Source of the DNA: Adineta vaga
Taxonomy: Eukaryota; Animalia; Rotifera
DNA length: 64,000 bases
Assembly: GCA_021613535.1 (NCBI GenBank)
Contig: CP075493.1
Coordinates: 868,001-932,000 of the forward strand
Direction of reading: 5' to 3'
Of the stretch, positions 2,870 through 24,586 are shown in pieces. Each line of letters starts with the position of its first letter. Position 1 is the first letter of the stretch. A program made the translations under genes and the position numbers. Below the pieces are notes generated by a model, which saw only the letters and a list, made by a program, of their open reading frames with translations, was not told the origin of the DNA and searched no databases.

Positions 2870-4604
2870 TTTATTTTAATTCAAAGTTTTTTTTTCTCAA
2901 ATACAACGATAATTTAGAAAGAACAAAGAATAAATAGTGCCTTCTCGTAATATGAGTATTTATCATGCGTACAAGAAGATATGAGCGTGGAGATTCTTTC
3001 ATCTTTTTTGACGCAATAACATCCCACTTAATGTATTCATAAACAGAGAAAAGATGTGTTTTTAGTACTACAAAACGAATGAAATGAACATCACATTATC
3101 AGCACAGTTGAAAAAAGGATTAAATCAATCAAAAATGAACAATTTGTCAAGATATCGTACACTGAATAATCCTCTCTTTCTACAAAATACTCCTACTGAT
3201 ACAACCAATATTGTAAAATATCGATCGTCTCAGCATCGAAATTGAACCTCTGATAACTTATAGTGGATTCAGTCATGTTATTTTTAAGAAAGCAACAAAA
3301 GAAGATCGAGAAGAGTAAAATAGTCGTCAATATTTTGAATGATTTCTTTATTGTATATTTAGTTTTATGTTTTCAATCACTTATTTGTTCTGTTTAATAT
3401 ATGATCAGTTCGACGTTCATTCTATAGTAATTGTGTGCTCAAAATACACCTCATTCTTCTGAAATGCCGACGAATAACAAATTAATGAGTCTCCCTCCTC
3501 ATTTTTTAATTGAAGTAGAATGTCTAGAACAGAATAAAGAGGAATCATTTTCCATCGACACGTTCACTTTCCTCTTACATCAATTCTTCTCATAATGATA
3601 GAGATAACTCAGCCGGTAAGATTTGGATTAATTCTTATTGCCTATATTCCTTCAGTACTTTGCACATTATTTCTACTTTATCATCTTTTATTTGATCGAA
3701 CATTACGACAAGCTCTTCACAATCATGTCATTATTCTTCTTCTTTTTGTTTGTTTCATTGCTCAAATGACAACATATCCATGGATTCTTTATTTTTATCA
3801 ACATCGTGACACATGGGATCGACCGATGCTCTTCTGTACTATTTGGGGATTTCTCGATTGGGGTCTTTATGTTGTACATACAATGTTATTTGCATGGGCA
3901 ACATTCGAAAGACATATTCTCATCTTTCATGATCGATGGGTAGCAACAAGAAAACGACGTTTTTTCGTTCATTATTTCCCAATGATATTTCTTGTTGTTT
4001 ATTTATTCATCTTTTATTTTGTTATTTACTTTTTTCCACCATGTGAAAATTATTCCGATTCTATATCTCCTGTTTGTATGTGGCCATGTTTCTATGATAG
4101 TTATACACTTTCAATGTATGATTATATCGTTCATCAAGTTTTGCCAACATTTACAATTGTTGTATGTAGTATTGGTTTACTTGGACGTGTTCTTTGGCAA
4201 CGAGTTCGAATGCGTCGAACAGTTCAATGGCGAAAGCATCGAAAGATGGCAATACAAGTTTTATCAATTTCATTTGTTTATCTTTTATTATTATTGCCGT
4301 ATGCGATTGTTTATATTGTTCGTATTTGTGGTTTTTCAAGTGATTTGATTGGTGATTTTTCAACATGTACGGTTTTCATTAGTTATTTCATCCTACTTTT
4401 GTTTCCTTTTGTCTGTGCATTATCATTACCAGAATTACAAAGTAAAATGAGAAGTTTTTTTGATTTACGACAACGGCGAAGACAAATTCATCCAGGAACA
4501 ATACCTGTTAGAACTCATGCAACTGGAAACGCTCGCGCATAGTTAGATGTTCTAATGAAACATAATAATTTTAGTTCTCATGTCTTTTTTGAAAAAATGT
4601 TTTA
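2870..4604 (+). repeat. Segmental duplication unit (upstream region + GPCR + 3' flank), paired with ~7482-9210
   Basis: ~2975-3594 is nearly identical to ~7581-8200. The 3' flank TAGTTAGATGTTCTAATGAAACATAATAATTTTAGTTCTCATGTC occurs after both stops. Bases 1-136 are a more diverged third copy of 3461-3594. Confidence 0.9.
3595..4542 (+). CDS. Orphan rhodopsin-like GPCR, tandem copy 2 (mosaic of copies 1 and 3)
   Basis: 315-aa 7TM ORF, near-identical over long stretches to 137-1075 and 8201-9148. Confidence 0.9.
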   Translation: MIEITQPVRFGLILIAYIPSVLCTLFLLYHLLFDRTLRQALHNHVIILLLFVCFIAQMTTYPWILYFYQHRDTWDRPMLFCTIWGFLDWGLYVVHTMLFAWATFERHILIFHDRWVATRKRRFFVHYFPMIFLVVYLFIFYFVIYFFPPCENYSDSISPVCMWPCFYDSYTLSMYDYIVHQVLPTFTIVVCSIGLLGRVLWQRVRMRRTVQWRKHRKMAIQVLSISFVYLLLLLPYAIVYIVRICGFSSDLIGDFSTCTVFISYFILLLFPFVCALSLPELQSKMRSFFDLRQRRRQIHPGTIPVRTHATGNARA

Positions 4605-5678
4605 TTGAGGGTGTGAGTCTGAAGTAAAAAAGAAAGATTCACATTCTCAGTCTCACTCAAAATATATTAGACGCTTACACTATCTATTTACATTTGGTTT
4701 TGTTTTCTCGTCCATTCAGTATTGATTGTCAAAAAAAATATCTTTGTCTTATTTATGGATTCAACTCGAAATGTTTTTTTTGTAGCGGGCAACTGTCCGT
4801 TTCCCATTTTTCCTAGATTTGATTATTTGTAATTAGAATTCTATTCAAAGAATATTTAACCATAGAATTAAATAGACTCTATTTTACAAGTTTTTTGCCA
4901 TGTTAGTTGCTTTCTAATGAGAATTCATAGAACTTGATAGAAGTCGTACCGACTTCTATTATGTGAACGAAGAATAGTTTGAACTTGTCCTTGAAATTAT
5001 TGACTCATTTTAAAACTATAGTAGGTCAAGAATGAATTGATTAGAGAGAAAGAATGTTTTACAAAAAAATGGGTATTCTTTAGAAAACTGGTTAGCGATA
5101 AATTAAACTTAGAAAATTTCATTGTATAATATTTATCTAAGCCGGTGGAAAAAAACCCTTTACGTATTTACCTTTCGTATTATCTGTCGATTCAAGTGCT
5201 TCTAAATATAAAGGTTTCTTTATCAAAGTTGGAAAAAAGAACATGTTTCATTTTATTTATTTCTTTCACACGATGATATGAGATCGGTGTGTTAAAGAGA
5301 AAACTTTATACTTATCTCGACCATTTAATGATTTTAAAGTAGGATTTATACGTAGATAATAAATAATTATTTTCTCTATTTTTCGTATATAAACATTTTA
5401 AACATGGTGCATATCTTTGAGAGTGACTATGAGAATATTCTGTATGAAAATTTAGGAAATACTCGATCTTGACCATCGATATATCATCACATAAATCTAC
5501 TTTCTTGTCGAACTGTAATAGAGTACTTTTAAATTCGAAATGATATATCCCTAGTTTGTTTTCGACTTGACTTTCCAAGTGAAAGTTCTTGGTCTCATAT
5601 AGTTTATATCCATTAGTTATAGATACAAACATGAGAAACATAATACTATTAACTGGATTGAATTTTTTTTTAGATATT

Positions 5679-6953
5679 ATGAGTACCATGGATGACTCAA
5701 CCAGTAATTCATCTATCGCTCAGAGTTTTGAGCAACCGTCACAAGAAGAAATAGATGAATGTAAAAGAATATTATCAACTGACGGTGTAAAAGGGTATGA
5801 ATCGTTTCTACGTAACAAAACAGAGCAATGGAAAGTCATTCCTCTAAATATTGGGGTTATTGGCAGTAGCGGTGCAGGCAAATCAAGTTTCATCAATGCT
5901 ATTCGAGATTTAGACGGAGATGATGAAGATGCTGCGAATGTTGGAGTCACCGAAACCACAATGGAACCAACATCATACTCTCATCCGAATAATGAAATGA
6001 TGAAGTTTTGGGATTTGCCAGGAGTTGGAACTAAATTATTTCCAAAAGAATCATATTTGGAAAAGATTGGCTTCGAAAAATTTGATTTCTTTCTTATATT
6101 GACTCATACACGATTCACTGAATTAGATACTTGGTTATCACAACAAATAAAAAGCAAAGGAAAACAGTTCTTTTTTCTGCGAACAAAAATCCAATGTGAT
6201 ATTGATAATGATCGAAAAGCTCATCCGAAAAAGTACAGAAATGACGCAAAAGCTGTCATAGAAGAAGTATTACGTCAAATACGCGCTAATTTGGAAGAAA
6301 ATCTAAATGATCTTTATGAAGCAGAAAAAGTCTTTCTCATTGATAGTTACGAACAAAATAAATATGATTTTATTTTGTTGGCACAACGCCTCGTCGAAGA
6401 TTTTCCTGATCTTAAACGTCAAGCATTTATCTTTTCGATGAACGCGTTTAGTGTACAAATGGTGCAGACAAAAGCAAGAGAACTCCGTTCAACAATGTGG
6501 AAATACGCCAGTCTATCAGCTGTGATAGCAACTATTCCTACTCTTGGTCTCTCTATTGCGGCAGATTTGGTAATTATTGCTACTGCAGGCAAAACTTTCT
6601 TTAATGGACTTGGACTCGACGATGCATCTTTACAGAAATTGTCCAATATTACACGTGCAAACCTACCGAAGTTAAAAGGTATTGTTGAACAAAATATCGA
6701 TGTAAAAAAGCTTCTTACATCACAAGGAATCAAAGAACTTTGCGTTTCCTTACCGGCAGTAATAGCTTCAGAAGCAGCAGAAGAAGGCTTACGTTTTATT
6801 CCTTTGCTCGGTTCTCTCATAGCAGCACCAATCTCATTTGGAACTACTTACTATATTCTCAATCATATCTTCACTAAAATAGAAGAAGTTGCCTTGCTTG
6901 TTGTGAAAACTGCCACCGAAAACATTTCAGTGGATATTGTAGATGATGAATAA
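5679..6953 (+). CDS. Immunity-related (IRG/IIGP-type, GKS class) GTPase
   Basis: G1 GSSGAGKS, G2 GVTETT, G3 WDLPG, G4 region FLRTKIQCD, and an IRG-like helical C-terminus with IPLLGSLIAAPISF. Probable ATG at 5679, just after an acceptor-like TTTTTTTTTAG at 5673. Confidence 0.88.
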   Translation: MSTMDDSTSNSSIAQSFEQPSQEEIDECKRILSTDGVKGYESFLRNKTEQWKVIPLNIGVIGSSGAGKSSFINAIRDLDGDDEDAANVGVTETTMEPTSYSHPNNEMMKFWDLPGVGTKLFPKESYLEKIGFEKFDFFLILTHTRFTELDTWLSQQIKSKGKQFFFLRTKIQCDIDNDRKAHPKKYRNDAKAVIEEVLRQIRANLEENLNDLYEAEKVFLIDSYEQNKYDFILLAQRLVEDFPDLKRQAFIFSMNAFSVQMVQTKARELRSTMWKYASLSAVIATIPTLGLSIAADLVIIATAGKTFFNGLGLDDASLQKLSNITRANLPKLKGIVEQNIDVKKLLTSQGIKELCVSLPAVIASEAAEEGLRFIPLLGSLIAAPISFGTTYYILNHIFTKIEEVALLVVKTATENISVDIVDDE

Positions 6954-7481: not shown

Positions 7482-9210
7482 CTAGTTGTAATTCAAAGTT
7501 TTTTTTCTCTTCTAAAATAGAACAATAATTAAGAAAGATCAAAGAGTCTTCGTCGCTTTCTTGTAATATCATGCGCATATGAAGATATGAGCGTGGAGAT
7601 TCTTTCATCTTTTTTGACGCAATAACATCCCACTTAATGTATTCATAAACTGAGAAAAGATGTGTTTTTAGTACTACAAAACGAATGAAATGAACATCAC
7701 ATTATCAGCACAGTTAAAAAAAGGATTAAATCAATCAAAAATGAACAATTTGTCAAGATATCGTACACTGAATAATCCTCTCTTTCTACAAAATACTCCT
7801 ACTGATACAACCAATATTGTAAAATATCGATCGTCTCAGCATCGAAATTGAACCTCTGATAACTTATAGTGGATTCAGTCATGTTATTTTTAAGAAAGCA
7901 ACAAAAGAAGATCGAGAAGAGTAAAATAGTCGTCAATATCTTGAATGATTTCTTTATTGTATATTTAGTTTTATGTTTTCAATCACTTATTTGTTCTGTT
8001 TAATATATGATCAGTTCGACGTTCATTCTATAGTAATTGTGTGCTCAAAATACACCTCATTCTTCTGAAATGCCGACGAATAACAAATTAATGAGTCTCT
8101 CTTGTCACTTTTGAGTTCAAGCAGAATTTCTGGAACAGAATAAAGAAGAATCATTTTCCATCGACACGTTCACTTTCCTCTTACATCAATTCTTTTCATA
8201 ATGATAGAGATAACTCAGCCGGTAAGATTTGGATTAATTCTTATTGCCTATATTCCTTCAGTACTTTGCACATTGTTTCTACTTTATCATCTTTTATTTG
8301 ATCGAACATTACGACAAGCTCTTCACAATCATGTCATTATTCTTCTTCTTTTTGTTTGTTTCATTGCTCAACTGACATTTTATCCATGGATGCTTTATTT
8401 GTATCAACATCGTGACACATGGGATCGACCGATGCTCTTTTGTACTATTTGGGGATTTCTCGATTGGGGTCTTTATGTTATACATTCAATATTATTTGCA
8501 TGGGCAACATTCGAAAGACATATTCTCATCTTTCATGATCGATGGGTAGCAACAAGAAAACGACGTTTTTTCGTTCATTATTTCCCAATGATATTTCTTG
8601 TTGTTTATTTATTCATCTTTTATTTTGTTACTTATTTTTTCCCAACATGTGAAAATGCTTTTTATCCATTGTCTTCAGTTTGTATGTGGCCATGTTTCTA
8701 TGATAATTATACATTTTCAATGTATGATTATATCGTTCATCAAGTTTTGCCAACATTTACAATTGTTGTATGTAGTATTGGTTTACTTGGACGTGTTCTT
8801 TGGCAACGAGTTCGAATGCGTCGAACAGTTCAATGGCGAAAGCATCGAAAGATGTCAATACAAGTTTTATCAATTTCATTGATTTATCTTTTATTATTTT
8901 TACCATATGCGATTGTTTATATTGTTAGTATTTGTGGTGTATCGAGTTATTTGATTGATGATTTTCTTGTCTTAACAATTTTTATTTCTTTTTTTATCCT
9001 ACTTTTGTTTCCTTTTGTCTGTGTTTTATCACTGCCAGAATTACGAACGAAAATGAAAAGACCTTTTGATTTACGACAACGGCAAAGACAAATTTATCCA
9101 GGAACAATACCTGTTAGAACTCAAGCAACTGGAAATGCTCATGCATAGTTAGATGTTCTAATGAAACATAATAATTTTAGTTCTCATGTCATTTTTAAAA
9201 AAATGTTCTA
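7482..9210 (+). repeat. Segmental duplication unit, second copy
   Basis: Direct repeat of ~2870-4604, including ~620 bp of nearly identical upstream non-coding DNA. Confidence 0.9.
8201..9148 (+). CDS. Orphan rhodopsin-like GPCR, tandem copy 3
   Basis: 315-aa 7TM ORF. Differs from copy 2 mainly in ECL1, ECL2 and TM6-ECL3-TM7. Confidence 0.9.
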   Translation: MIEITQPVRFGLILIAYIPSVLCTLFLLYHLLFDRTLRQALHNHVIILLLFVCFIAQLTFYPWMLYLYQHRDTWDRPMLFCTIWGFLDWGLYVIHSILFAWATFERHILIFHDRWVATRKRRFFVHYFPMIFLVVYLFIFYFVTYFFPTCENAFYPLSSVCMWPCFYDNYTFSMYDYIVHQVLPTFTIVVCSIGLLGRVLWQRVRMRRTVQWRKHRKMSIQVLSISLIYLLLFLPYAIVYIVSICGVSSYLIDDFLVLTIFISFFILLLFPFVCVLSLPELRTKMKRPFDLRQRQRQIYPGTIPVRTQATGNAHA

Positions 9211-11893: not shown

Positions 11894-12833
11894 AGAAATG
11901 GAACGAACTGTTGTATTCGTTCTAATTGGTAAGTGTGTGTTAGGAAAAGGTGCGCTATCGGGATTCAGAATAGGATCTTCTGAAGACTCATCGATAACAT
12001 TATCACAGCGTTAGCACCATTTAAAATTCATTGTGAAAAAAAAATTATTGTCTATTTTTATTTCTTGAATATTTCTGATATTCATATTATAATACAGTAC
12101 ATTCTAAAAAATTCCCTTTTTAAAGTACTTCGCAAGTGTAAAGATAGATTCAAAGAAGAATTTCCAAATTATAAAATATTACTTCAATAATTCTCGACGC
12201 TCAGTTATTAAACTCATGGTTTTGACATTGAATGATTTTACTTCTTATTGTTAGTAGACAACAAATTACTGTGAATATATAATGAAATTTAGGGAAAATA
12301 TGATTGTTTAATTAAATTTCTAATCATTTTCATTGTGATACCTCTGTCAGCATAAGCGATTGATAACCATTGTCAAAACAAATAATTACTGATGAAATAT
12401 TGAACCAATATTATTTCATCGTATTTATAAATCAAAAAGTATATTTAATTCTGAGCGTTGTGAAGCAATATTGTTTTTGTATAATGGTTTAGAGGTGAAA
12501 CGTGAATGTAATTTGTATATTTTGTTTTAAAAGCTTTATCTTTTTATGATACTACATTTTAGAGTGCTTCAGAGAATAAAACAACAAAAGAAACTGTTGG
12601 TCTTTCTGTTACACTAAAGTAATATGCTCTCATTTATTTTTGTGATGAATCATTCTGTCCAAATTCATATATAAATAAAGAACATAAATGCTATAGTTTT
12701 ACTCAATCACACCCAACGTTAAAATTATTTTAATACGATAGATAAATAATAGTACTATTTTTTAAAATGCCAACGTGTAGAATTTCTTCACTTTATTTCT
12801 AATAATGGATTTTAAAAATTATCAAAGTTTATA

Positions 12834-15800
12834 TTAAAATTCAGTAGTAGATGCTTTAATAGGTACTCCTTGCCAATGTGTTTCCGGAGGTATACATTCA
12901 CCTTGCATTACCAGACTAAAAGGTCCAATGTTTGCACCGTGACCTATACGTGTATTCAGAAGAATAATTGATCCACCACTGATCATTACTTCATTTTCTA
13001 TGAAAATATCACCAAGCTTCATCACCCGATCTTCAAAAAGATGCGTTTGAATACCAACATCTGTATCCATCACAACGTAATCACCAATATGAACTAAATC
13101 AAATTCCGTTATGTCAGCCGTATCCAAATAACATCCTCGACCAATATGAACACCAAAACATCGTAATATAGGAGCTAAAAAAACAGTACCATGCAAAAAA
13201 TCAAGAATTACATTACAAACTAAATTTTCATAAATCACTGTAACGAATTCTGATATCCACACAAACGGACTCCATAATGGATCTTGTCGAATACGATATT
13301 TACCGATCAGTAACCATTTGAGGGCAAGACAAAGTAAAAGTGAAGGTATCGCAAATATTACGATATAGTTTAATGGTAGTGCAAGAAGGTATAGATCCAT
13401 GTAATTATACTCTTTGCTCCAAATGAATAGTTCAACTGCAATACCAATTTCAAAGACAAATACAATTCGTGGCACAGCTATTCGTAACGTTTCAATTATA
13501 GTTCGTCCGAGAATTAGATAAATACTTGGACGATAAGTCATTTGGTCCGAAATATCCGCTCCCGTATTGTATCGATTGGTGAGAATGATAGGAGGTGATC
13601 CAACACACGATTCACCTTCTTTCAGTTGATCGGCAACTGTTGACATACATCCAATCAAACATTGATTCGGTATTTGAATTCCACTGTCTATGCATGCTGC
13701 ATTACCAATGAAGACGCGTTGACCAATAATCGTTTTCTGTATATGAATCTGACCACGAAATATATATGGATTCGCCAGTGTAACTGTATCAGCTACAAAA
13801 CTTTCGTCACCTATCTCGACTAACGAATGAATCATTCCAGATGCATACGATACTTCACAACGTTGACCAATTTTCATGCCAAATGCTCGAAGTAATGGTC
13901 TAGCATATATTGTGGCAAATACTGTATAAATATTTTCTAAAGCTACATCAAACAATTGATCGAATGTCCATTTCCGAATGAAAGTCAATGAATTTGTACT
14001 GTATACACCTTCTTTAATTGAACCAATGAAAATAAAGCGTATGACAATAATTTCTATGATGATTAAACATGTATACAGAATTCCGACAACTGGAGAAAAA
14101 CAGAGCACTTGCAACCAAGGTGACATGGATGATAATCGAACATAGTCAAAGAGAAGAAGACCTGGAAGCATTGGAAGGAAATTCATCAACGGTAAAAAGA
14201 AGGAAATTAATAGCAGAAATATGAATGAAACAAAAATAGATTTCAATTTCTCCTGATTTGATTCCATAATTATCTCTTCTGGGATTGTTTGATAACAGTA
14301 TTTTGCTGGCGAACCTTGCCAGGCTTCATTGGATGGAATACACATACCAGAAGGAAGAAATGACATCGAACACAATTTAGAATGATCTTTCATACTACTT
14401 CCACCATTTAGAACACATTGAGTACCAACATGAACATCATATCCAATACAAACTCGTCGAAATTTAAGTGTATAATCTGCGATGAAAGCTGTTCGAATAT
14501 CAACATCTGATGAAAGCGTTGATCCATCACCTACACTTAATAGATCTGCAGCTGAACAATCAATATCACCAATATGAACATTACGACCAATCTTAGCGCC
14601 AAGTAATCGATAGCAAATTGACATCCATGGTGTATCTGAGAAGTTGTCGAATGATGATAAGGCAAGAAATTGGTTCACAGTCCACCAGCGTACATACATC
14701 GAACTCCAAAGAAGGAAATCTCCTTCTCGATATCGACCAATTACAATCCACTTGACAAGTGTTGCCAAAAGATTCAATAGCACAGGCATGATGATATATG
14801 TTGCATAGGCAGCAAAAAATGCATATATGAGACCGTACTCGTGCAAAGCAATGTCAAACATGATAAAAGGTAATAGTAGATCAAGTGCTGAAATACCAAA
14901 GATAATCAGAAGAACGAAAGCTTGAATCAGACTACACAGAGTAAGTCGTAGTATCGATGGTTTATAAAATGCAGTAGCGGAGATAAATATTTTATTGGCC
15001 TTAGGATTATTATGTTCTATTGATAGGCGTTCAGCAAGTGTCTTAGCTGTTTTACATTCGTATAAGTCTTGAATAGATAAATTCGGGAACGATTCACGTA
15101 ATTTACTAATTGTTTGTGCTGCGGTTAACGAGTGTCCACCGAGATCGCGGAAGAAATCGTCGTTTTCTGTTACTTCAGCATGCGGAAACGTACTTTGAAA
15201 AGCATAATGAACAATACCCATCGTGCTTGGATTGATGGCATTATTCAAAAATACTTGTTTTTCTGCAATAAACACAAAAGGTTTTAGTGTGATTCCTAGT
15301 TGAATGACAATGTTAAGAACACCTAAACTATTGCAGAAAAATAAGTCATCTAATTTTATGGAAATGGTACATATCATTTATTATTTTCTTGATGCCTTCT
15401 GGTCAGGAGCTTTCATCACATCACTTTCCTCATCATTTTTAAACATATGTAACGAGTGAACTTACTTGAATCGGTTATTGTTCCATTAATCCTTTTCTCG
15501 CTATGATCTCGTACTGATAAGACATGAAGTGCTTTACGGTCGATTTTTCCACTACTTAAAAGAGGCATTTTTTCGTCTACTTTAATCAATCGATCAGGCA
15601 CCATATAGCGTGGTATTCGTTTTGCAAGTCTTTCACGCATTTTTGATTCGCTCAATTCGCCAACAACATAAGCAATGATTTGTTCATTTTGAACAGTAAC
15701 AGCAGCTGATAGAACGTTGCCTTTTAAATTAAGTAATTCTTCTTCGATTTCACTAAGTTCGATACGAAAACCCCGTACTTTCACCTGAGTATCAATGCGT

Positions 15801-17430
15801 TGATGATAATAAATTTGACCGTTCTCAAAGGTGACTTGATCGCCTGTACGATAACCGTATTCAGTAAATTTTTCTTTCGTCAATTCATCGGAACCGACAT
15901 AACCACGAGCAACGCCTGGTCCACGAATACATAATTCACCGGTATTTGCTGATGTTGGTTGTCCACTTATTTCGTCAAGAAGACAACATACGTAATTTGG
16001 TAATGGCACACCTATACTAATCGATTGATCCGGATGTACAAGAGATAGAGTAGCGGCAACAGTTGTTTCGGTCGGCCCATAGGAATTATAAATCAGACGA
16101 TCTTCTTTCCACCAACGATCTATCAGCGTCTATTAAATTATCATTTATTAAATTTTATTCCCTTTTCATCTTTCCTTTGCCTATACCTACTCATAGCTTT
16201 TTGACGATTTCTAGATTTCAAACTCAATATCTCCCGACGGAAGTCAGATTTTCTCTCTTCATAATGCTTTTCAATGTCATCTCAAATTTAAGATGAACCG
16301 AGGAATATATTCTAAGATAGAAAATACAACGAGAGGGAAGAAATATAAAGGGGTAGAGGAAAAGAAGATCATGTATCATTCAAAATGATGTTCGTTGTTT
16401 CTCTTGACACAATAAGTTGGGGTTTTGTATTAGAGCGACACAAGATATGATATGTAAGAAAAAAAGAGTTTCTGTTGCATTATTCTCATGAAATTCTCAA
16501 CTGAATTCAAAGGCATCAAAAATTCAATTTATCCAACTTTTTTCTTTAGATTACATACTGATATTTGAAGAGATTCAAGTATTTTTTTACCTTGGGTAAA
16601 GCTTCGCCGCCAACATTAAGTAGACGAAGTTTGAGAGCTGGATCATTATGCAGGAGAAGTAATAGAGTCGGTACCGAGAAGATAACTGTAACCGAATGAT
16701 GTATAAGAAAGAGATGAAGACGATCAGTATTTAAAACATCGGATTTCGAACCAATAACCATAGTTGCACCTACCAGATAAGTCAGGAACGTTTCTTCAAG
16801 AAATAAATCAAACGCTGCTGAAGAACCTTGATAAATAATGTCATCGTGTTTAATGTGTAAAATTTCATTGTCAGCACGTACAAAATGACAAATATTTTTA
16901 TGAGTAATAGCAATTGCTTTCGGCTTTCCCGTTGAACCAGACGTGCAAATAATATAAGCGATCGATTGATTATCTATTTCGCCTTTTAAATCAATATCAA
17001 CCGTTGATTCATTTTGAGGCAGTGTTTGAATATTGACTGCTACGGGATGATTGCAGCGAGCTTGAGAATCGACTAAAAGAAGATCTGCTTTAAGATCAGC
17101 TAATACTTCATTGACACGTTCTTCTGGAGTATCAGCATCAAAAGGTACATAAGTAGCACCAGTCATCAAAACAGCAAGAATTGATGTATGTAATAGAGCT
17201 GATCGCGTTAACCAAAGTCCCACAATGCAACCTGAACCAACCTTTCGGCTGTCACGTAAAGCATGGGCGATATTTAGAGCACGTTGATGTAATTGACCAT
17301 AAGTTATTTCTTCGTCCAACCAGCGAAGAGCAATTTTATTTGGACAACGTCTCGCAGAAATAAGAAAAATATCATGAAGATATTCGTCTTGAAGCAGATC
17401 GGGACGTTCGGCACCTAATAGCAATGTCAT
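12834..17430 (-). CDS. Single-module membrane NRPS of the epsilon-poly-L-lysine synthetase (Pls/PosA, TIGR02353-type) family; 3 exons, 1310 aa
   Basis: Exons 17430-16591, 16129-15466 and 15262-12834 join in frame through GT-AG introns (phase 0 and phase 1), giving 3933 nt. A-domain motifs YIICTSGSTGKPK, FDLFLEE, NSYGPTE, GELCIRGPGVARGY, YRTGD, QVKVRGFRIEL and SGKIDRKAL. PCP FFRDLGGHSL. Three TM-pair + hexapeptide-repeat-like domains (LGAKIG, FGMKIG, FGVHIG) ending in QTHLFEDR..WQGVP. Confidence 0.93.
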
Positions 17431-17593
17431 ATCTAAAACCAGATATCATAATGCATTACTATTGATTGTATTTGAATCAATTATTATCAACAAGAAATTC
17501 TATATCTGATCAATTCCTCACACGCAATAAGAGACCCGTTTTTTTTATAATGTCTTACCATAGAAAGTTTCTCGAGAAATCTTCTGATGTGCC

Positions 17594-18930: not shown

Positions 18931-19881
18931 ATGCTCTCTGATACAGTACGATTTTGGTTGCTTCTCTGTGTTTTCATTCCGTCATTTTTCTGTTCAATTT
19001 TTGTTCTTTATCATCTTCTATCAAATCGTCGATTACGTCAAACTCTTCATAATCATATCCTTATTATTCTTCTTTTCATTTGTTTAATTGCTGAAGTAAC
19101 GATTTATCCTTGGATGCTTTATTTTCATAAAAATACAGTTAATTGGAAAAGATCATTTATGTTTTGTAATTTATGGGGTTTCTTAGATTGGTTTCTTTAT
19201 GTTACACATACAATGTTATTTGCATGGACAACTATTGAACGACATATTCTTATTTTTCATGAAAAATGGATATTTACAAGAAAACAACGGTTTTTCCTTC
19301 ATTATTTTCCTCTTGTTGCACTTCCTCTCTATTTATTTATCTTCTATTCTATTATGTATTTTTTCCCACCATGTCGAAATCATCTTCAACCATCAACTCT
19401 TCTTTGTATTTTCCCATGTCTATACGATCAATATATTTTATCAATGTGGGATTTCATAGTTGATCAATTAATTCCAATTTTAACTATTGTTGCATTTAGT
19501 ACTGGTTTACTCATACGTGTGTTAAAACAAAAACATCGTATGTGTCGTACAATAAATTGGCAAAAACATCGAAAGATGACAATTCAATTGTTATCAATTT
19601 CATTCTTATATCTTATAATTCTCTTACCATATACCATAGTTTATATTGTTCGTTTATGTGGTTTTAAAGGTTCATTGAGTACTGAATTTTCTACATATAC
19701 AGTTTTCTTAAGTTATTTTATTCTTCTTCTTTTCCCATTTGTTTCCTTTTTATCATTACCTGAATTACAAACTAAAATGAAGAATATTTTTCAATTAACA
19801 CAACAACAACCACAACCCACACGAATGAATCCGATAATGTTTACTGTTATAACTCCTGACAATGATCATACACAAAATTAA
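18931..19881 (+). CDS. Orphan rhodopsin-like GPCR, older paralog of the tandem trio
   Basis: 316-aa 7TM ORF sharing LHNHI, WGFLDW, ERHILIFH, WxKHRKM and SLPELQ with copies 1-3. Confidence 0.88.
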   Translation: MLSDTVRFWLLLCVFIPSFFCSIFVLYHLLSNRRLRQTLHNHILIILLFICLIAEVTIYPWMLYFHKNTVNWKRSFMFCNLWGFLDWFLYVTHTMLFAWTTIERHILIFHEKWIFTRKQRFFLHYFPLVALPLYLFIFYSIMYFFPPCRNHLQPSTLLCIFPCLYDQYILSMWDFIVDQLIPILTIVAFSTGLLIRVLKQKHRMCRTINWQKHRKMTIQLLSISFLYLIILLPYTIVYIVRLCGFKGSLSTEFSTYTVFLSYFILLLFPFVSFLSLPELQTKMKNIFQLTQQQPQPTRMNPIMFTVITPDNDHTQN

Positions 19882-23647: not shown

Positions 23648-24586
23648 ATGATACTCGAAAAAATTCTCTTTCCAGCACCAAGCCCTTCACATTACACATT
23701 AGCTTCGCACAAAGAACATCTTCTTTGGCTTCCATCTGATAAATATTCAACTGAAACACCAGCAATCCCATGTATGCTATATTCACCAACACGAGAAGCT
23801 CGAGCATTTATTATATGGTGTCATGGTAATGGTTGTGATATTGGAAGTATGGATAGGACATTTACAGCACTTAGTTGTCGACTTCAAGCTCATGTACTTG
23901 CCTTTGAATATCCTTCTTATGGTTTATTGAAGGGAATAACATCAACACCAAGTGCAACATCAATTAATAATCATGCTCAATGTGCTTATTCATTTGTTCG
24001 TGACACACTAAAATGGCCAACAAATCGAATAGTTATCTATGGACATTCAATAGGTAGTGGTGCTGCATGTTATCTTAGTGCAACTCAACCAATTGGTGGA
24101 CTCATACTCCAATCTCCTTTTACATCAATTAGCAATTTAATTCGAGAAAAAGTTGGCTTTTTGTCAAATGTAATTAGTAGCTCGTTTTGGAATAATTATC
24201 AAGCAATGCAAGATATTTCATGCCCAATACTTTTCATACACGGACAACGTGACAATTTAATACCATCACAACATTCTGAAACGTTGTATGATTCATTCAA
24301 AGATAAAGATAACAAGACAATTGTGTTGTTACCAAATGATGATCATAATTCGATCTCTGATTCAATTCTTCTCATGAATGTGGAACCATTTATCGATAAG
24401 TATTTTGAACCGACAACAAAACCAATGCCTGAAATTCGAATTGATCCAATTTTACGTGAACCACCATCTATGAAATCCAATTTAGACTCCGTTCCGTGGT
24501 GGTCTTCAGTGCTAACCAGTGCAACTAATGCGTCGACATCAATATTCAGCTCGCTTAGTGGAAAATCTAGTGACAATGAAAAATAA
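23648..24586 (+). CDS. ABHD17-like alpha/beta hydrolase (depalmitoylase family)
   Basis: LFPAP N-terminus, HGNGCDIG, EYPSYG, nucleophile GHSIG, HGQRD (Asp) and DDHN (His). Confidence 0.88.
   Translation: MILEKILFPAPSPSHYTLASHKEHLLWLPSDKYSTETPAIPCMLYSPTREARAFIIWCHGNGCDIGSMDRTFTALSCRLQAHVLAFEYPSYGLLKGITSTPSATSINNHAQCAYSFVRDTLKWPTNRIVIYGHSIGSGAACYLSATQPIGGLILQSPFTSISNLIREKVGFLSNVISSSFWNNYQAMQDISCPILFIHGQRDNLIPSQHSETLYDSFKDKDNKTIVLLPNDDHNSISDSILLMNVEPFIDKYFEPTTKPMPEIRIDPILREPPSMKSNLDSVPWWSSVLTSATNASTSIFSSLSGKSSDNEK

Follow-up and report, generated by a model that had tools for sequence, protein, structure and literature searches.

A predicted PosA-type non-ribosomal peptide synthetase gene, intact, conserved and horizontally acquired, on chromosome 1 of the rotifer Adineta vaga

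Epsilon-polylysine and other cationic homopoly(amino acid)s are, to our knowledge, products of microbes only. Two of the enzymes that make them are the closest described relatives of the gene considered here. PosA, the delta-poly-L-ornithine synthetase of Acinetobacter baumannii (PDB 8G95-8G98; PMC10522769), consists of a single module with an adenylation (A) domain and a peptidyl carrier protein (PCP) domain, followed by a TIGR02353 domain; it is about 1310-1330 aa long and has neither a condensation (C) nor a thioesterase (TE) domain. Pls from Streptomyces albulus, an epsilon-poly-L-lysine synthetase whose A domain is in PDB 7WEW, is a member of the same family, with identical domain architecture and, presumably, the same iterative mechanism. 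We analysed a window of 64,000 nucleotides covering bases 868,001-932,000 of chromosome 1 of Adineta vaga (the assembly consists of six contigs, 100.8 Mb) and found in it a gene of this family, referred to below as the synthetase. In our estimate the probability is about 0.7 that this gene is functional, was acquired horizontally and has long been domesticated, and that it codes for a single-module synthetase of the PosA (ornithine-type) branch. It shares the domain layout and size of PosA but is encoded by an animal, contains two introns and has no adjacent phosphopantetheinyl transferase (PPTase) gene or operon.

The synthetase gene is located on the minus strand at 0.88 Mb of the 18,146,847 bp chromosome, amid animal genes. 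It is represented by three open reading frame (ORF) pieces (17430-16546, 16009-15416, and 15377-12834). A database search with exon 3 retrieved a deposited A. vaga protein of 1310 aa annotated as "hypothetical protein" (I4U23_000171, here P0001). Exon translations of 280, 221, and 808 aa plus one split AAA lysine codon are exactly its residues 1-280, 281-501, and 503-1310. Therefore the three-piece model with two GT-AG introns, proposed in an earlier note made from the DNA sequence of this window, is the same as the annotated one (feature coordinates are given in Table 1). Searches with the spliced model were run separately for each exon, and P0001 was used at the steps requiring the full-length protein.

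Pfam models identify AMP-binding in exons 1 and 2, AMP-binding_C in exon 2, PP-binding and Hexapep in exon 3. Neither Pfam nor NCBIfam detected a C or TE domain in the synthetase, in agreement with the earlier note, and Nowell et al. (2024; PMC11258130) also enter "C_domain_detected NO" for this locus. The NCBIfam equivalog domain model TIGR02353 ("Pls/PosA family non-ribosomal peptide synthetase") is matched from end to end (positions 2-695 of 695) with a score of 507.9 bits at a cut-off of 423.1, which bears out the Pls/PosA architecture and family membership suggested before. Since this full-length score exceeds the equivalog-domain cut-off, the columns invariant in 88 family members, including the QTHLFEDR motif, are retained here. 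The A-domain motifs SGSTGKPK, NSYGPTE, YRTGD, RGFRIEL, and SGKIDR are all intact, GGHSL of the PCP occupies aa 543-547 (with Ser546), and QTHLFEDR is found at aa 1240-1247. All the elements read from the sequence earlier, down to the three hexapeptide-like domains with their transmembrane pairs, could thus be located.

Three pairs of long hydrophobic segments seen in the hydropathy profile correspond to six membrane helices. The helix pairs are also present in the structure that AlphaFold2 predicts for aa 585-1310 from 88 homologs (mean predicted local distance difference test score 94.6, predicted template modelling score 0.93), where one unit, composed of a pair of long helices, a helical portion and a beta-helix, is repeated three times. 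No solved structure for the membrane domain of the synthetase was found by sequence. The top solved matches in Foldseek are maltose and galactoside O-acetyltransferases, i.e., trimeric left-handed beta-helix acyltransferases, with target TM-scores of 0.5-0.6. The three tandem domains C1, C2, and C3 can be aligned to each other; the histidine of QTHLFEDR occurs in C3 only, without a His at the aligned place of C1 or C2. As this residue, H1242, is invariant across 88 of the 88 aligned family members, it is the probable catalytic base.

The fold is that of single-turnover O/N-acyltransferases, and could also serve an enzyme which transfers a single aminoacyl group to a lipid, a sugar or a small amine, or one whose substrate has drifted to something new for the family. 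Two more observations are in line with such a non-polymerising enzyme: Pls-type tails terminate multi-module non-ribosomal peptide synthetases (NRPSs) in the A. vaga genome, and the rotifer-specific residues at positions 4 and 9 of the specificity code (considered below) lie on a long stem branch of the rotifer clade (0.73-0.84). We nevertheless regard this explanation as rather unlikely, given the full-length TIGR02353 match with its invariant columns kept and the fact that characterised single-module members of the family are all homopolymer makers (PMC10522769).

The ten-residue specificity code of the synthetase, extracted from an alignment of 120 homologs, is DLEFNGSVAK. The A. vaga paralog, the A. 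steineri protein and the second A. ricciae copy have DMEFNGSVAK, and a metagenomic contig of rotifer type (L097) has DMEFNGSVSK. The tested codes are DMEHNGTVSK for PosA (L-ornithine), DAESIGTVVK for Pls (L-lysine), DFECLSAVTK for diaminobutyric acid and DFEYVGTVTK for diaminopropionic acid (PMC10522769, Supplementary Table 2). PosA depends strictly on its Asp217 and Glu221 (code positions 1 and 3), and this D/E pair is kept in all such synthetases; Met218 (code position 2) sets the size of the pocket and is replaced by Ala in lysine enzymes; Thr304 and Ser313 form hydrogen bonds with the delta-amine, and the S313A mutant is 183-fold less efficient (PMC10522769). D208 and E212 of the synthetase correspond to this Asp and Glu, expected to bind the diamino acid. 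Its code agrees with that of PosA in 6 of 10 positions (D.E.NG.V.K). The substitutions of Leu for Met (position 2) and Ser for Thr are conservative, while position 4 carries Phe for His and position 9 Ala in place of Ser313. Among solved single-domain structures, the PosA A domain (8G95/8G96) is the best match with 293.6 bits, compared to 210.7 for GrsA-PheA and 179.5 for the A domain of Pls. In the phylogenetic trees the synthetase falls in the clade with ornithine-type codes, apart from the lysine-type clade. Judging from these sequence comparisons, the substrate is most likely L-ornithine and not lysine, with real uncertainty attached to this assignment.

The earlier note called the gene "epsilon-poly-lysine-synthetase-type". 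A true epsilon-poly-L-lysine synthetase would be alike in architecture and family, and PosA itself is weakly active on lysine, an activity raised by one mutation at code position 2 (PMC10522769). However, DLEFNGSVAK does not match the lysine code DAESIGTV(V/I)K and has the bulky Leu where lysine enzymes carry Ala. Together with the placement among ornithine-type enzymes and the much weaker match to the Pls A domain, this makes a lysine enzyme improbable, and the type has to be changed from Pls to PosA.

By analogy with PosA and Pls, the cytosolic A domain would adenylate a diamino acid, most likely L-ornithine, which would then be loaded on the carrier Ser546, primed beforehand by a PPTase. 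The C-terminal domain, with three membrane-helix hairpins bearing three beta-helix acyltransferase-like domains as a pseudo-trimer, would repeatedly couple the carbonyl of the thioester to a side-chain amine on a free acceptor chain, with His1242 as the probable base. The expected product is a short cationic isopeptide polymer resembling delta-poly-ornithine, released without a TE domain and probably through the membrane.

Genes that could support such a pathway are present. A search for an Sfp-type PPTase had been proposed in the earlier note, and the genome does contain PPTases: two genes of the AASDHPPT type (AASDHPPT_N and ACPS domains), on chromosomes 2 and 5, either of which could prime the carrier. 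As the rotifer copies have no adjacent ACPS gene, they must depend on these AASDHPPT-type genes located elsewhere. Arginase-family loci are also present in the A. vaga genome, which makes ornithine supply plausible. No conserved partner gene was found beside either of the two A. vaga copies, the ORFs downstream of the paralog and of the synthetase being unrelated, and a tblastx comparison of the A. ricciae flank with the window's first 32 kb gave no match. The closest relative among bacteria has an ACPS-type PPTase gene (L011, 11918-12505) that overlaps the stop codon of the bacterial synthetase gene.

A protein database search has found close named matches in Adineta only: the A. ricciae protein is 74% identical, and the A. 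steineri protein and the second A. vaga gene are about 50% identical. Metagenome proteins with 54-57% identity end at the rotifer exon boundaries, and the metagenomic contig L097 has the same three-exon layout as the synthetase and a G+C content of 36%. Judging from these close matches, the canonical gene may be confined to Adinetidae and environmental relatives. The next-closest matches (36-40% identity) are bacterial and come from Acetobacteraceae and Rhodospirillales, both from metagenome-assembled genomes (MAGs), including those from bogs, and from Granulibacter bethesdensis, which falls in the same neighbourhood. The code of these bacterial relatives is DMEHNGT/SVTK. They differ from the rotifer gene in having about 68% G+C and no introns; in the densely packed 68% G+C contig coding for P0014, an ACPS PPTase gene comes next in the operon.

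Trees built on the PCP and membrane region group the rotifer copies in one clade (support 100/100). Its sister is a eukaryotic clade: quick trees give this grouping Shimodaira-Hasegawa-like approximate likelihood ratio (SH-aLRT) values of 93 and 96, and a careful tree of 27 rows gives it 99/97. Both clades are nested in Acetobacteraceae-type bacteria (100/99). A second database search revealed that the eukaryotic sister group is a broad fungal family covering Dothideomycetes, Leotiomycetes, Eurotiomycetes, and several Basidiomycota (Aureobasidium, Cercospora, Dothistroma, Venturia, Mollisia, Exophiala, Jaminaea, and others). Like the synthetase, these PosA-like fungal genes are eukaryotic and bear introns, and they are of ornithine type by their code, mostly DMENNGTVTK; they differ from the rotifer genes in sequence (about 35% identity) and in intron positions. 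When more fungi are included, monophyly is recovered both for fungi (99) and for rotifers (100), with the two as sister groups (97), so rotifers are not nested among the sampled fungi. Forcing the rotifers together with bacteria to the exclusion of fungi makes the tree 17.1 log-likelihood units worse (approximately unbiased test, p = 0.010; LG+G4 model), for a group defined after inspection of the tree and with many rows deviant in composition. No intron is common to rotifer and fungal genes; those in the fungal genes are at query aa ~121-166 (L012) and 213-221 (L096).

The position of the rotifer clade within a tree of bacteria and fungi bears out the horizontal origin proposed for this gene. 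The description of the gene as bacterial holds only for its ultimate source, which looks bacterial. Its nearest sister group is a broad clade of fungi, and the direct donor may have been a fungus, some unsampled eukaryote or, in parallel, a related bacterium. The sister relationship with fungi makes this family a tractable case for studying gene movement between eukaryotes.

The A. vaga genome has two canonical copies of the gene, which lie at 0.88 and 11.88 Mb of chromosome 1. The paralog (L001, P0012; 50% identical) has introns of about 50 nt (L001 400-449) and about 65 nt at both positions found in the synthetase. The A. ricciae ortholog (L015, which ends at a contig edge) has intron 2 in the same codon and phase, 79 nt long. 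The position of intron 1 is also occupied in the metagenomic relative L097. Since intron positions are shared with the paralog and the A. ricciae ortholog, the introns must be older than the duplication and the Adineta radiation. The introns of the synthetase are longer than those of its relatives: 461 nt against about 50 nt in the paralog for intron 1, and 203 nt against about 65 nt (paralog) and 79 nt (A. ricciae) for intron 2.

Comparison with A. ricciae by the Nei-Gojobori method, performed per exon and pooled over 1027 codons, gives a synonymous divergence (dS) of 0.82, a nonsynonymous divergence (dN) of 0.145 and dN/dS of 0.18. The gene is under purifying selection. An unexpressed relic, i.e., a horizontal insertion that is neutral and decaying, could be suspected from the position toward the chromosome end, where foreign genes accumulate. 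It is contradicted by the intact frame of 1310 codons with all motifs kept, by the low dN/dS at this dS and by orthologs and paralogs with conserved introns in three Adineta species, and we consider it very improbable.

The family is microbial, so bacterial or fungal contamination of the assembly has to be considered as well. Against it stand the two spliceosomal introns and the location on an 18.1-Mb chromosome between ORFs coding for rhodopsin-type G protein-coupled receptors (GPCRs), an IIGP GTPase and a RING protein. The exon G+C content is 37%, near that of the host (about 31% in the window), whereas the nearest bacterial contig has 68% and fungal contigs have 41-45%, and the rotifer copies form a clade of their own. 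The animal context argued for in the earlier note is confirmed, and the probability of contamination appears negligible.

About 14 other loci in the A. vaga genome have TIGR02353 matches below the cut-off (60-134 bits), with AMP-binding and PP-binding in long upstream frames. They correspond to multi-module NRPSs with a Pls-type tail ("NRPS_term" rows of Supplementary Data 9; PMC11258130), in which, as in the synthetase, A and PCP domains are followed by a helix-pair/beta-helix domain. These tails differ from the synthetase in being joined to assembly lines; they are only 16-22% identical to it, score below 135 bits and form a separate long-branch clade. The separate long branch gives no support to descent of the tails from the synthetase gene.

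The locus is already catalogued in a published supplement and is not interpreted there. In Nowell et al. (2024; PMC11258130), the sheet "nrps in Av20" of Supplementary Data 9 has an entry for region1.2 at Chrom_1 865834..900430, given as intact, 1330 aa, NRPS_term, with "in_3_domain_set NO". Its coding pieces 880834-883377 and 884546-885430 are exactly ORFs of the window. The set analysed in that study, including fungal induction, required a condensation domain, so the synthetase locus and with it the Pls/PosA class were left out of the published expression work (PMC11258130). Pls and polylysine are unmentioned in the main text of Nowell et al. (2024; PMC11258130), and the Pls/PosA type is unmentioned in the 2023 survey of animal NRPSs. 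The paper on PosA records family members in "Metazoa" but tabulates Nematostella only (PMC10522769). We found no literature connecting rotifers with polylysine or homopoly(amino acid)s. What is new is the interpretation of a PosA-type synthetase in an animal, on sequence grounds, as an intact, conserved and horizontally acquired member of a known family.

By analogy with its microbial relatives, the likeliest use of the synthetase in the animal is antimicrobial, particularly antifungal, chemistry. We speculate, with somewhat less than even odds in its favour, that Adineta rotifers synthesise and export a polymer similar to delta-poly-ornithine, using a gene obtained from fungi or in parallel with them and retained, from a time before the Adineta species diverged, as a defence against fungi or a protection of the surface. 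Several points weigh against the ornithine and defence interpretation. Position 9 of the code is Ala in the Adineta copies, a change that is costly in PosA, and positions 2 (L/M) and 4 (F/H) also differ, so the substrate could have shifted. As the synthetase was outside the condensation-domain set used for fungal induction, nothing ties the gene to infection. In addition, no named ortholog from Rotaria or Didymodactylos is present among the close database matches, compared to three species of Adineta.

Should the interpretation be true, Adineta would provide the first example of such a polymer from an animal. A conserved, complete and intron-bearing synthetase in an animal leads to a concrete prediction, namely that ornithine oligomers are present in rotifer tissue or medium. 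The gene also widens the picture of the "borrowed" chemistry of bdelloids.

Table 1. Features of the synthetase gene (window positions) and other A. vaga loci with TIGR02353 matches below the cut-off (C, chromosome)
Feature	Position	Strand	Details
Exon 1 (aa 1-280)	16591..17430	-	start ATG 17430-17428; A-domain core, SGSTGKPK (aa 164); specificity residues D208, L209, E212, F251, N272, G274
Intron 1	16130..16590	-	GT..AG, 461 nt, phase 0
Exon 2 (aa 281-501 and first base of codon 502)	15466..16129	-	NSYGPTE, YRTGD, RGFRIEL, SGKIDR (K475), A-domain C-terminal subdomain
Intron 2	15263..15465	-	GT..AG, 203 nt, phase 1, splits Lys502 (A/AA)
Exon 3 (aa 502-1310 and TAA stop 12836-12834)	12834..15262	-	carrier domain and whole TIGR02353 membrane domain
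Peptidyl carrier domain (aa 528-581)	15024..15185	-	phosphopantetheine Ser S546 = TCG 15131-15129, inside GGHSL
Membrane helix pair 1 (aa 605-676)	14739..14954	-	hydropathy, structure model
Tandem domain C1 (aa 677-836)	14259..14738	-	helical part and left-handed beta-helix
Membrane helix pair 2 (aa 837-914)	14025..14258	-	hydropathy, structure model
Tandem domain C2 (aa 915-1081)	13524..14024	-	structure model, internal alignment
Membrane helix pair 3 (aa 1082-1154)	13305..13523	-	hydropathy, structure model
Tandem domain C3 (aa 1155-1310) with QTHLFEDR	12837..13304	-	H1242 = CAT 13043-13041
AATAAA, possible polyadenylation signal	12792..12797	-	37 nt past the stop codon; weak evidence, DNA being AT-rich
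Sub-threshold TIGR02353 loci (L003-L010 among them)	C3:15293659-15295338, C5:699904-701454, C6:13686152-13687813, C2:15985146-15986684		
Sub-threshold TIGR02353 loci, continued	C5:10263544-10264824, C5:48928-50022, C3:236083-237288, and others		

The sequence TTTTAG at 17433-17438 of the minus strand, 2 nt before the start ATG, can be read as a possible acceptor, for 3' splicing or trans-splicing, at the 5' end of the mRNA.

Single-exon ORFs, each about 315 aa long and matching rhodopsin-family seven-transmembrane proteins, are located on both sides of the synthetase (3595-4542, 8201-9148, and 18931-19881, plus strand), resembling a local GPCR array. The 454-aa ORF at 5589-6953 (plus strand) strongly matches the interferon-inducible GTPases (IIGP) with 235.9 bits, which places an immunity-type GTPase 6 kb from the synthetase. 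A 312-aa alpha/beta-hydrolase ORF is found 6 kb upstream of the synthetase (23648-24586, plus strand).

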